Shown here in pieces: positions 41,684-61,100 of a stretch of 64,000 bases of DNA. A model generated the notes under the pieces. It saw only the letters and a program-made list of their open reading frames with translations. It made no database searches and was not told the DNA's origin. The translations under genes were made by a program, and so were the position numbers. Origin of the DNA: Chlorokybus atmophyticus (lineage: Eukaryota > Plantae > Mesostigma and Chlorokybus algae); the NCBI GenBank assembly GCA_009103225.1, contig RHPI01002836.1:234578-298577 (forward strand), read 5' to 3'. Position 1 is the first letter of the stretch. Each line of letters starts with the position of its first letter.

Positions 41684-41826
41684 TATACTGGTCCGATATG
41701 CCGTGAAAGTCCGGACTATGAATGGTTCGCAACCGGACCAGGCATTTCCCCGGTCCGACTGTCAATGGGTCTCCGGACCATGCATGGTCCGGACTACATC
41801 AATGCTTGACCATATATGTTCCGGTA

Positions 41827-42250
41827 CAGTCTAACCTCGATAAGTGCATATTCGATTAGTGCATATCCGCGTGTAGTGCATAAATTTGGCCATCACCGAC
41901 GTCTTCAGGGGGAAAACCTGTGCGTTAAGAGCATATGCATTTATCAATAAGTGCATACCTTGAGATGCCTAACCTTTGGTGTGTCTATGCCCTTATCAAG
42001 GTGAATTACGCCTAAGTTACAGACAGTTTATGATTACAGTGTATCATAGTTACGGTCGTACACATTACAACGTAACTCAGGATTAGGTTTACTCCATCAG
42101 TGCATAGGTTACGCATTTATGCCAAGCCTAAGTGCATAATAAATGCACTTACAGCGGGTGCATAATTTATGCACTTAATGAGGATGCATAAACGCGATAA
42201 GTGCATACATAAGCCCGTTCCCGATGGTATGCACTATCGAGGTTAGACTG
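41827..42250. mobile_element. Tc1/mariner-type MITE, inverted copy of 35163-35578
   Basis: Same TIRs, TA on both sides, different flanking sequence. Confidence 0.88.
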
Positions 42251-44102
42251 TAGATAACATCCAAGTGGCTGGTCCGAACCGGAATCATGGGGCGGACCAT
42301 TGCTGGTGCACGCTGAGCTTATCGGTCACTGTTGACAAGCAGCACGCACCGTGCATGGGCTGCGGCTCATAAAAGCTCATACAGGTCCACATTTTCGTAA
42401 GATTGCGGACCATTCATGGTCTTTAACCCAACTAGGCTCTTCCTAATCCGATTATCCGCGGGTAGGGACCATGCATGGTCGGTACCCCATGATTGCTGAA
42501 CCATGCATGGTTCGAGGTTGGTCCTCAAGTAAATGATTCCGGTTCGGCATATTATGTAATTACATGGAGTGAAGACTGGGCAGTCGCACCATGCATGGGC
42601 CACTACTGGCCACTACCGGCGCGACGGATGAAAAAAGAATGACCTGCAAATTATGGCAGCGGAGGATGTGCTCATTGACCCCGTTAGTGCATGCATTCAG
42701 ACAAGTGAATGCGTTGACAGGGCCAACCAGCACATCCCTCCCACTGCCATAAGATAGTGTATTTGGTATGTTCTCGTATATGATACACGTCATAGCTGAG
42801 ATTGCGCGGACGCTGGGATTCAAGACGTAGCCCAGCCTCTCATCTGACCGTTGATTCAAGCGTATTGAACGGTCGGCATATTCAGTAATTACATGGAGTG
42901 AAGACTTGACAGTCGCACCGTGCATGGTGCGACTGTCGAGTCACGTGCATGGCCAACAATAGGGTTCCTACCTACATGGTCTGCGTAACAGGGTTGCGCT
43001 CAGAGAGGGAGCAGCGGCGCTCTGGTTGGTGGCGGCGGCCTCGTTGGCGGTGTCTTTGCTGGCAGAATCTAGCTGTACCAATGGCCAATAAAAAGGCTGT
43101 CCGCTTCGCTAAGGACAGTTAGTACTAAGTTGGGAATCAACTTGCAACCAACCAGTAAGAGGAACACCTTTCGTAGGAACAACCGCCTTCGCAGCCAATA
43201 GAGTTCCCTACCCTTACCGGAGCAGGCTGATGTCGTCCAGCACCATGTGGTTAATGACCAGCCCATTGAGGCTGTCAACCCTCAGCCCGCCCATGAAAAT
43301 CCGGCCATGCTCGGGCAGCATAGCGACATCAGCTAGCAGCATGAGCAGTAAGTTGACCACGCTGTTGTACCTGGCGTACTGCTCTTCATTGAGTATACAT
43401 GACAGTATGCATGCCACTAACAATAGGAATGCTGTACATAAACAGCCTTCACCATGCTAAGAGACTGTCGATAAACTTAGTGCACTTGCTGCCTTGCTGT
43501 GATCTCCACTGTCAGCCGATGGTGCCATTGCATGTGGTGTGTCACTGACTGCAAGATTGCTTCAGGCATCCCGTGCTTGGACAGCCGACTGTTGATTTGG
43601 CCGGCACCAGCAATGAAGCGGCAGCTACACTTCACGAAAGGGAACAGTCAGGTGGACAGCCGACTTGCGATGTTGCCAGCACCAGCAGTGCCGCGAAAGC
43701 TCCACTTCAACATCAGGCTAATCCATAGCCGACTGTCAACATGCCCAGCTCCAGCAGCGCCGCAGCTGCTTCACTTCAGCATCAGTCGGATCAACAGCCG
43801 ACTGTTGACATGCCAATCGAAGACATGTTTGAGCCTCTTGGTAGCGATGATGATTATTCAGAACAGTAAGAAGTGTCCTACACAATTTGCTCTTGCCCGA
43901 GGTGCCATGGCAAGGTGAGCAATCAACTTGTTGCGCGCACAATTGTCGTACTGTAGCTGTCCATGTCTGGGAATGCTGCATGCCTGCGACTGTCCGTAGC
44001 GCCACCATGCGCGTCCGTAGCCCACCATGCGCGCACTTTCAGCATTGCCATCCATGCTACCTACATTGACAGTCGTATGTTGCGATTGGGCAGTGGGTTG
44101 AG

Positions 44103-57900: not shown

Positions 57901-58150
57901 GGATCTTGCGAGCAGTTGTCAGCTTTGCAGCAAAGAAAAAGTGGTTGGTGGCCAACGATGAGGTTGAAGGAGGGTGCGAGTGGCGATATGAATCTCGCAA
58001 ACTACCAGGTATGCATATTGAACTGCAAGTCATTGACAGTCCTTGGGTAGTTGTCAAGGCAATTACACATTGCAGGGCTGTTGAGCGAGGGAAGGAAGAA
58101 AAAGCCATGGCAACCCAAGAAGCCGTGGATGCGACAGCCCTCGTCATCCT
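54911..58150 (+). CDS. Multi-exon gene of unknown function (gene X)
   Basis: Exon-like segments from ORFs 54836-55540, 55557-55772, 55819-56412 and 57657-58211 are homologous to 10965-13540. Limits are approximate. Confidence 0.7.
56522..57177. repeat. (CA)n microsatellite, ~650 bp
   Basis: Pure CA run. Confidence 0.98.
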
Positions 58151-61100
58151 AGGTGGGTGGTTTACTGTGCTACAGTTGCATGTGTGTGTCAACACTATAT
58201 GTCTTGTGTAAACACAGGTAGACTTACAGTTGTTTTGCAAACATTTGATGCACGAGTTGGCTGCAGGGGCTGTCCACAGAGGCTGTTAAACAAGGGTGTC
58301 CCTGGCTCCTGAGGTTGGGAGTCAGCACACAATGTGAAAAGATGGGAGTGGCTTCACATGGGGTCCAGCTGCCCAGGCGAAGGTGCAACACAACAAAGCT
58401 GTTGTCAGCTGCGACTGTCAACAGCAGCGTGCAGTGCATGTAGGAGACTGTAGGTATAGTACATGACGCTAGCTTAATACTGATGATCATGATCAGACTG
58501 TCCTTTGCCAGTCCATTCCAGCATTTTTGTGAATTGTATGCGTGGCGGATTGTATGCACCAGGCATGGTGCATGCAACAGCACGCACACCATGCATGGCT
58601 TCCATGCATGTGACATCATGACATACCATGATTGGTGCACCAAATCAAGGTAGACCGCACCATGTATGGTGCGGTGCCTGGCAGGACCATACGTGGTGCC
58701 GCTTGTGGACCATGTATGCGCAACACCTTGTCGGTAGCCATGGACCATTCATGGTGCGACTGTCGACCAGACTGGCACCATATGTGGTCCACTGTGCAAG
58801 GAGGGCAGCGCACCATGATTGGTCCAGGCAATCTCAGTAACAAACATGACTCGCAGTCCGTATCCATGGACCATGTATGGTGCGACTGTCAGTCACCGGA
58901 CATGAAGCAAGCAACAAACCATGGATGGTCCACTGTTCCAGGGGGCATCGCACCATGCATGGTCCATAAATTTCATGCATACTGGCCACCATGCCTGGTG
59001 CGTCCCAAGGGACAATGGTACCATTCACGTGAAATTCGGACCATGCATGGTCCGACTCTCCATGAAAGCCGGACCATACATGGTCCGTCAATTTCACTTA
59101 GCAGGGGAAAATCCCGATCCTGCGTCACGGACCATTCATGGTCCTTGAACGTCAATCCGTGTGTAGATATCTGCAGTAGGCTAGGAGCATTCTCCTGTAT
59201 GGGGCTGCCTAGGGTATATAGGCCGCGGGACAGCCGCCAGAGACTAGACCGGACAGATCAGACTAGACAGACCTAGAGTTTGCAGTAGATGCACTTACGA
59301 GAGTCTTGGTCTCCCTGTTGCAGTGTGTGACTTGTACCCTTGTGCTTACTTTGTGTGTGTGCATGCATACATGCAGTAGAAGGTCTGCATTTGTGTGAGC
59401 AGCTTTGTGCTCGTTAGCTGCATAGCTACACTGTGTGTGTAGAGTCTCAACTCAACACCCTGCTCTCTATACAGCACTGATTGGCAGAAGTCTCTGCCAA
59501 CAGGTTATGGGCCCACAACCACACTAGTGTGGATTGCTGTGAGAGCATTGTTGAGATTGTAGGAGTTGAGAGATCAGTTGTGCTTGGGTTGAGAAGCAGT
59601 TGTGATTGTTGAGGGGATTGAGAACCCGTGGGAGTGAGCAAGCTGTCAGAGACGCTGGAATTCTGAAGGAGCTTGAAGAGGAAGTTGTTCGTCACCGACA
59701 TGGGGGATGAGCGAGTTCACATCGAGCAGTTGGACCAGGACAACTACAGCATCTGGAGCGTGAAGCTGAAGGCTTTACTCATTGGGAAGAGGATTTGGAA
59801 GTATGTCGACCCCAACAACAAGGAGTTAGAAGAAGCTGCACCCGGCACCCTATCAGCTTGGACAGATAAGCAAGAGGAAGCCCTGTCTGTGATTATGTTG
59901 CGAGTGAAGGATGTGCATCTCCCTACAGTTGCTGAGTGCAACACTGGTCGTGAGGCTTGGCAAGTGCTGAAGGATTTGTTCCAGTCCAACAACAACAGTA
60001 GAAGGTCGCACCTGAGGAGGAAGCTGTCGTTCCTGCGCATGGAGACTGGAGAAAGCATTACCACCTATGTGAGCAGAGCGAGACAGCTGCAACAGGACCC
60101 ACAAAGAGTTGGGCATCGTGTCAAAGAAGAGGAGGTTTGGCATGTCCTAGCAGGCCTATAGGAGCGCTATGATACCATTGTCACTGTGCTGGAGTCGTCT
60201 TCAGAGGAGTTGAAGATGCGTGATGTTATCCCCAAGTTGCTGAGCATGGAGATGAAGATGACAGAGAAGGAGGAAGGATCAGAGAACAGCGCCTTCGCTG
60301 CATTCGTTCCAAAGAAGAGCAAGGGCAACTACAGCAACAACGGTGGAGAAGACAAGCGCGAGAGAACCTGCTACTACTGCAAGCTAAAGGGCCACATCAT
60401 TAGAGACTGCTTCAAGAGGAAGGCTGAAGAGTCTGGCAAAGGAGTACCAGCGGCAACGTCATTCACCGCATTCTGAAAAAGCCAGCAGCAATGAAGCAGG
60501 GGAGGCAAGCTATGTGATTGTTGTTAGCTTGCAAATAGGAACACTTGGTGTGAGAGTCCTTTGTGAGAGATGCAAAGGAGCTTTGTGCATTGTTGTACAT
60601 GTGTGCTGTGTATACCTGCCGGCCTTTCGGTGTGAGGGGTTTCCTTAGTGGGAGGTAAAGTGTTGCTGCAAGGTGCACTATGTGTGTGCTTGGGAGGACA
60701 CTGTGTGTAAACTCGTGATCTGGGAGTAGACTACTGTGTATGGTTGTACTCGTATTGGTTAGTCCTTGTGGAGAGGAGACAATGTCCAGGAGAGAAGACA
60801 GCAGCAGCAGCGTGACAACGAATTTGAAGATAGCTGGAGAGGAGGACTTCTAGGTGGAGCCCTGGACTACAGACTGTGGAGCACTGGAGGCAGTTTACAC
60901 TGGACAGTTGAAGCCGTGGGAGCTATATGCTGAGGAGTGGAGCTGCTACCAGAGCTGGAGCGTTACCTTGGTAGTGGGCTCGAGGGTGTCATGGTGGCAC
61001 CAACTTTGTGGCGGACGAAAGGGAACTGGGTGTGACCTGCGGAAGCGTGATGGAGTCTGCATGAAAAGAAGATCAGCAAGAGTCTACATGAGGAGAAGGA

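Follow-up and report, generated by a model that had tools for sequence, protein, structure and literature searches.

A directional word with a GACWGTC core is enriched in a CACTA-type transposon family of Chlorokybus atmophyticus

We carried out a computational analysis of a 64,000-nucleotide stretch of the Chlorokybus atmophyticus genome (GenBank assembly GCA_009103225.1, contig RHPI01002836.1, forward-strand positions 234,578 to 298,577), referred to here as the window and numbered from its first base. The window contains two related DNA transposons, elements A and B, in which copies of the seven-base word GACWGTC are dispersed far beyond the termini. An earlier interpretation made from the letters alone, hereafter the sequence-only reading, had described this word as a palindromic motif spread through element B and proposed that it provides binding sites for an element-encoded dimeric protein, analogous to the target motifs of VANC proteins. 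The two elements and the main landmarks of B are the following.

34810-37274: element A, a 2.5-kb non-autonomous relative of element B with the same termini; 7 GACWGTC and 13 GACAGYC
41029-59163: element B, a CACTA-type DNA transposon of 18.1 kb, with terminal inverted repeats (TIRs) at 41029-41063 and 59129-59163
44103-48066, plus strand: transposase gene of B, with open reading frame (ORF) segments at 44103-45316, 45709-46157, 46243-46515, 46624-47125, and 47323-48066
50173-50461: assembly gap in B of 289 N, followed by a run of 24 C

Element B is assigned to the CACTA type because of its CAC termini (which start CACACGG), its 3-bp target duplication (TAG, at 41026-41028 and 59164-59166), the subterminal palindromes of the family (~46 16-bp palindromes of the form G[G/C]ACCATGCATGGT[G/C]C in A and B together, arrayed at both ends), and a weak Transposase_21 match. 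The 17-base terminus CACACGGATTGACGTTC is found at exactly four places in the window, corresponding to the ends of A (34810 and 37274) and of B (41029 and 59163). B is a clean insertion: in two other copies of the host repeat, at 23700-23960 and 25924-26185, the sequences that flank B (40901-41028 and 59163-59300) adjoin directly; each of these copies is an intact empty site with a single TAG. The Transposase_21 match lies in ORF 44103-45488 (Pfam E 3.4e-5; 23.6 bits, below the curated cut-off of 28.6), and the sole database relative of the transposase ORF is P0001, a distant marine-metagenome protein of 30% identity that carries the same family (PF02992). A tblastn search with P0001 gives exon matches at 44679-45266 and 45705-46097, which, together with GT and AG, bracket intron 1 at approximately 45316-45708. 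Ten exact ORF products were looked up in a protein collection, and none was present.

Exact search of the window returned 68 copies of GACWGTC, versus 12.1 ± 3.4 in dinucleotide-preserving shuffles (largest 22). Fifty-four of these lie in element B (41757-58890), seven in element A (35650-37171), and seven in the other ~43 kb. The number expected in B from its own composition, obtained as analytic Markov values of orders 1, 2, and 3, is 3.4, 3.9, and 6.2, respectively, corresponding to a 9- to 16-fold excess; the seven copies in A compare with 0.1-0.5 expected. When 7-mers are ranked by their over-representation in B versus the rest of the window, GACAGTC comes first once the (CA)n microsatellite is set aside. 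By this within-window test, the motif is strongly over-represented in a single transposon family and scarce in the remaining DNA, and by exact search the other transposon families present do not carry the word. The enrichment of GACWGTC in this family is confirmed and is a solid observation. The by-eye counts of the sequence-only reading (~50 copies in B, ~7 in A, and few in the flanking retroelements) agree closely with the exact ones, and its cluster coordinates are correct to within 1-2 bases, but its chance expectation of ~2 copies in B was slightly low (3-6).

Within B, exact copies occur at 5.2 per kb outside long ORFs and at 1.35 per kb inside them (p = 1.4e-5), the latter value falling to 0.74 per kb without a low-complexity Asp-Ser-Pro stretch, compared with 0.16 per kb in the rest of the window; long ORF segments serve here as a rough proxy for exons, the limits of which are approximate and taken from ORFs and one distant homologue. 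This ~4-fold difference in density bears out the earlier claim that the motif clusters in introns and intergenic DNA. The arrays are located upstream of genes, within introns, between genes, and within the inner subterminal zones, and the two densest clusters occupy gaps between transposase ORF segments. The clusters in B are listed below.

43463-44074: five exact copies upstream of and at the transposase ORF start, including a word-carrying 69-bp x2 tandem repeat (43676-43814)
45369-45627: seven exact copies plus variants in transposase intron 1; the first four point left and the last three right
47137-47261: five exact copies in the second non-coding gap between transposase ORF segments
48065-48102: three exact copies and one GGCTGTC, where two large genes converge at their 3' ends; the four words together form a 45-bp palindrome that is almost perfect
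50830-50920, minus strand: five exact copies in the low-complexity Asp-Ser-Pro stretch of a minus-strand ORF, with a 15-bp array (50842-50893)
51689-51736: four exact copies, with a 12-bp array (51689-51719), beside a nested hairpin-ended insert
54212-54816: seven exact copies where a spacer separates minus-strand from plus-strand ORFs; a 149-bp x2.2 tandem repeat (54512-54844) holds five of the seven
57232-57652: four exact copies and two GGCTGTC, duplicated by a 386-bp x2 tandem repeat (57146-57917)
58413-58890: four exact copies within the inner subterminal zone on the right; GGACC..GGTGC palindromes (58744, 58870) abut two of them

The nested foreign inserts and the assembly gap, which together span 1.8 kb, contain no exact copy and one GACAGYC variant; exact copies are absent from a 430-bp insert resembling a miniature inverted-repeat transposable element (MITE; 41822-42252), from the hairpin-ended insert (51739-52140), and from a (CA)333 tract. 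Minus-strand frames are open to both edges of the gap and are one base out of frame with its nominal 289 N, a length that is only estimated. The gap could hide copies but could not create them, and since no copy lies within 370 bp of it (the nearest are at 48096 and 50830), it has no bearing on the motif finding. As to the suggestion that the motif is embedded in coding Asp-Ser-Pro repeats, all five copies at 50830-50920 are indeed in register as GAC AGT C.. (Asp-Ser) with a minus-strand ORF that is putatively coding.

To define the form of the word, all 61 sites in A and B were oriented by their central base and written as GACAGTC. Directly before this core there are 28 T, 20 C, and 2 A, and directly after it 31 G, 17 C, and 1 A; the next two positions favor C and A. 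Comparison with the mirror position reveals that the flanks are asymmetric, since T is found at -1 in 28/61 sites and its mirror base, A, at +1 in 1/61. The resulting consensus is approximately ATTGACAG(T/C)CGC, i.e., (A)TTGACAG(T/C)CGC(A). The single-base variants that are co-enriched share this polarity: only NACAGTC, with 26 copies in B, and GACAGCC, with 22 copies in B and 6 in A, are found in excess, and their mirror forms are not enriched. GACAGTN, GGCAGTC, and all variants of positions 3 and 5 are at background, such that changes at positions 2, 3, 5, and 7 show no excess, transitions included. Lengthening the word sharpens its restriction to the family, from GACAGYC (76 in B, 13 in A, and 12 elsewhere in the window) to TTGACAGYC (21, 4, and 0, respectively) and GACAGTCGC (17, 3, and 0). 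GACWGTC is therefore not a true palindrome but the palindrome-like core of a directional word 9-11 bases long.

The arrays are short and of mixed orientation, and the sites are clustered, with 21 of 53 gaps measuring 35 bp or less against 5.3 expected for even placement. Close pairs of sites comprise 22 direct pairs, mostly 12-15 or 24-31 bp apart, and 14 inverted pairs with spacings of 7-31 bp, so that there is no fixed dyad geometry. A true palindromic dimer site of fixed geometry was rejected on these grounds, i.e., the asymmetric flanks, the asymmetric tolerated variants, and the variable inverted spacing. The palindrome of the sequence-only reading is thus retained for the core but not for the extended word; likewise, in its proposal of an element-encoded dimeric binder, the VANC-like pattern stands, "dimeric" is weakened by the asymmetry and by the variable dyad spacing, and our searches of B for a binder, detailed below, found none.

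The word is largely separate from the subterminal repeats. Exact copies directly flank only 4 of the ~46 subterminal palindromes (37151, 42917, 58744, and 58870), and 6 of the 61 sites directly flank subterminal ACCATGCATGGT palindromes. Flanked palindromes become part of a larger perfect palindrome that reads GACAGTC, 16-mer, GACTGTC, as in the two composites below.

37142-37171: composite palindrome in element A, GACAGTC + GGACCATGAATGGTCC + GACTGTC
42908-42937: composite palindrome in the inner left subterminal zone of B, GACAGTC + a 16-bp GCACC..GGTGC palindrome + GACTGTC

Bases 8-17 of the TIR read ATTGACGTTC(G) in every copy and contain the box ATTGACGTTCG. This terminal box matches the extended word ATTGACAGTC(G) at 8/10 positions, a resemblance that was spotted post hoc and has a rough chance probability of ~0.01. 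We consider this a lead, in that a protein that recognizes the ends may also recognize the interior word. The earlier description of the motif as distinct from the terminal arrays holds for the most part, the exceptions being the 6 sites that flank subterminal palindromes and the resemblance to ATTGACGTTCG.

Element A provides a second setting for the word. By blastn, A and B have ~160 bp in common on the left and ~180 bp on the right, and otherwise share only the 430-bp insert, which is in opposite orientation in the two elements; the interior of A (35584-37095) has no similarity to B detectable by blastn. This interior nevertheless holds five exact copies of the word and further TTGACAGCCGC-type copies, some of which build a hairpin.

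35650-35774: hairpin in element A with 43-nt arms built of GACAGTC and GACAGCC copies

These features of A would fit either of two explanations: the word may be needed in cis by non-autonomous members of the family, or A may derive from an unseen relative with word-rich non-coding DNA. Three further observations concern A itself. The MITE-like segment of ~430 bp (35161-35583 in A and 41822-42252 in B) is 92% identical in the two elements, lies in opposite orientation relative to the termini of its host elements, is rich in GTGCATAA/TTATGCAC, and has inverted ends of ~27 bp and no GACWGTC. Unlike B, A has no matching 3-bp target duplication (GCA at 34807-34809 versus ATA at 37275-37277). A tRNA-like sequence at 36761-36833 (Rfam tRNA 26 bits versus a gathering threshold of 29, E 0.003; no ARAGORN call) may be a decayed captured tRNA gene or the head of a short interspersed nuclear element.

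The public runs X1 and X2 harbor many diverged copies of the family (~90-100 contigs each, 80-99% likeness), on contigs that are short and fragmented, and none of the RNA runs contains the stretch. The match of these contigs to B ends at 45322/45343 and is regained at 45702, with further divergence past 47095 and 48038, and these break points coincide with the borders of the motif-rich non-coding parts. Contigs from both runs also carry a 77-bp deletion variant (joint 45508 to 45586) in which two motif copies are replaced by a single GACTGTC.

What emerges is a strong statistical pattern, which suggests that copies of the word are recognized by a DNA-binding protein with sequence specificity, through which this transposon family is addressed; we place the probability of this reading at roughly 0.5. 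The confinement of tolerated variation to particular positions is what would be expected of a protein recognition site and not of the neutral decay of an ancestral repeat. The binder would more likely be encoded by the element than by the host. Taken separately, an element-encoded reader is plausible although short of an even chance, and a reader of unspecified origin is rather unlikely. Through cis-acting sites, such a protein is predicted to address every member of the family and nothing else, with the arrays growing, shrinking, and turning over by local duplication and deletion. One candidate is the N-terminal zinc-finger region of the transposase, which is put forward because the word resembles the ATTGACGTTCG box of the TIR; another is the SET/coiled-coil protein of B or the product of its neighbor gene. 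Binding might protect the element from silencing, mark its chromatin, or assist the assembly of a transposition complex on a very long element.

Several results weigh against this proposal. A Pfam search of 20 ORF segments of B, in which short exons may be missed, returned only the weak Transposase_21 match and generic coiled-coil matches, and no VANC-family protein was found among these segments. Atlas feature searches left the tail of the coiled-coil protein blank and gave only sub-threshold leads to transposase-type families for ORF 54836-55537. A single-sequence AlphaFold model of the coiled-coil protein tail (48466-49035, minus strand) is all-helical with a predicted local distance difference test score of 59, too poor to use. 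Conservation of single sites is not strict: the site is gone from one tandem copy (the 54810 copy), and the site in B that is homologous to the composite palindrome of A at 37142-37171 (59031-59067) has only degenerate versions of the word. A contig at 97.8% identity keeps 4/4 covered sites, with 0.6 hits expected by chance, and carries no weight. Finally, the background against which family restriction was judged is this 64-kb window only, all of it transposons.

Among the alternatives, the one that survives best, although we doubt it, holds that the word is a neutral by-product, i.e., that small repeat units, originally parts of subterminal repeats, were spread by replication slippage, unequal exchange, and gene conversion and are unread today. 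Several clusters are indeed plain tandem arrays, and Tandem Repeats Finder identifies word-carrying units of 12, 15, 69, 149, and 386 bp. Some subterminal repeat units physically include the word, the 45508 to 45586 deletion fuses two motif copies, and individual sites decay, as seen at the 54810 copy and at the right end of B. However, when 15 bases on each side are compared, the 61 sites of A and B sort into 50 groups whose flanks are unrelated, and with each cluster counted once, there are still ~24 independent places in B versus ~3 expected sites. Tandem repeats thus explain only a minor part of the GACWGTC excess. A simple tandem-slippage artefact is rejected on the basis of these 50 groups. 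Nor does a neutral origin readily account for tolerated variants at two positions only, where decay should hit all seven, or for the recurrence of the enrichment in the unrelated interior of A. Moreover, the adjacent 16-bp palindrome is missing at almost all interior sites, which argues that whole subterminal units were not simply copied inward.

An unlikely alternative is that the sites recruit a host transcription factor to enhancer or promoter modules that drive the genes of the element, e.g., a KNOX/BELL TALE homeodomain protein. The TALE site of BELL and KNOX proteins is TGACAG(G/C)T, which BELL proteins bind (PMC13470011), and its hexamer TGACAG is contained in the extended word; TTGACAG is itself enriched 9-fold, and clusters of the same word in introns and upstream regions are typical of enhancers. 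The two sites diverge in their flanks, however, since T precedes GACAGTC in only 28/61 sites, less than half, and the invariant 3' part is (T/C)C and not (G/C)T; the TALE site was rejected as a full explanation for this reason. In addition, non-autonomous A is enriched although it has no obvious gene to drive, and the other transposon families in the window lack the word. An RNA-level signal, such as an intronic splicing element acting in the transcript, would suit the location of the two densest clusters in transposase introns but is very improbable given that both orientations are found within one intron and that copies are also present in subterminal and intergenic DNA and in gene-less element A.

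Returning to sequence-specific recognition of the family, such self-addressing by transposons is, to our knowledge, experimentally known from essentially one system, VANC in Arabidopsis VANDAL elements. The VANC21 targets of VANDAL21 are a 9-bp word, YAGTATTAY, that is enriched in the family and found mainly in non-coding DNA in dense arrays; these arrays evolve by gain and loss of tandem repeats, and the VANC21 protein binds them with a loss of DNA methylation (PMC5735166). The pattern described here resembles VANC21/VANDAL21 in that a short, family-specific word occupies introns and upstream regions, at high density in arrays that are in part tandem-derived, and is also found in non-autonomous members (PMC5735166); variation of the arrays among copies is indicated by the contig breaks. 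It differs in that the element belongs to the CACTA and not the Mutator superfamily, its host is a streptophyte alga, and the system is known from its sequence pattern; furthermore, the arrays are of mixed orientation (22 direct and 14 inverted close pairs), whereas those of VANC21 have one orientation, and no VANC-like protein was found in B. The earlier analogy to VANC targets is thus upheld for the hallmarks of the pattern (family restriction, non-coding arrays, and a non-autonomous relative) but not for the protein.

A second precedent comes from the superfamily itself. The subterminal repeats of En/Spm CACTA elements, which are short motifs in direct and inverted orientation near the ends, are bound by TnpA. 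The likeness here is that some subterminal palindromes have the word on their flanks and that a box of the terminal repeat is similar to it. TnpA motifs are restricted to the outermost few hundred bases, whereas the word occurs along the full 18 kb of B, central introns included; the subterminal role is filled here by a different repeat, G[G/C]ACCATGCATGGT[G/C]C, and no TnpA-like gene was found. A literature search for the word in a transposon context retrieved primers and unrelated sites but no paper on it, and a search for Chlorokybus CACTA elements retrieved nothing.

A more specific form of the recognition-site proposal, which we regard as quite improbable as a whole, is that the word serves as the address label of a transposon-encoded chromatin system, in which an element protein would read TTGACAGYCGC arrays and thereby direct a SET-domain enzyme, or some other activity, to every copy of the family. 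The reader in this case could be the SET/coiled-coil protein itself or the product of the neighbor gene. If true, an early-branching streptophyte alga would have a CACTA counterpart of VANC anti-silencing that evolved independently. The VANC-like sequence architecture is seen here in another superfamily, in an alga that branches close to the root of the plant lineage, and on an element with a SET-domain gene; if real, address codes of this kind would be a strategy that large DNA transposons have adopted repeatedly. As refined here, the directional word offers a concrete probe (TTGACAGTCGC; ATTGACAGTCGC) for an electrophoretic mobility shift assay or DNA affinity purification sequencing.

The window contains a few further repeats of note. 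An array of GGGACC..GGTCC palindromes at 10100-10520 resembles the subterminal zone of a related CACTA family, and no terminal repeat matching it was found in the window. Between the outer and inner left subterminal palindromes of B, the stretch 41187-41700 consists of B-specific, short GTGACG/GCGTGATG-like repeats that are absent from A and contain no GACWGTC. The ~400-bp insert at 51739-52140, which lies beside a motif array, has at each end a perfect-looking hairpin of ~74 bp of the same sequence and is probably a nested foldback-type element. Finally, the region 56511-57917 comprises (CA)333 followed by the 386-bp tandem duplication, each unit of which starts with a short (CA)n, and includes a single N at 57535.

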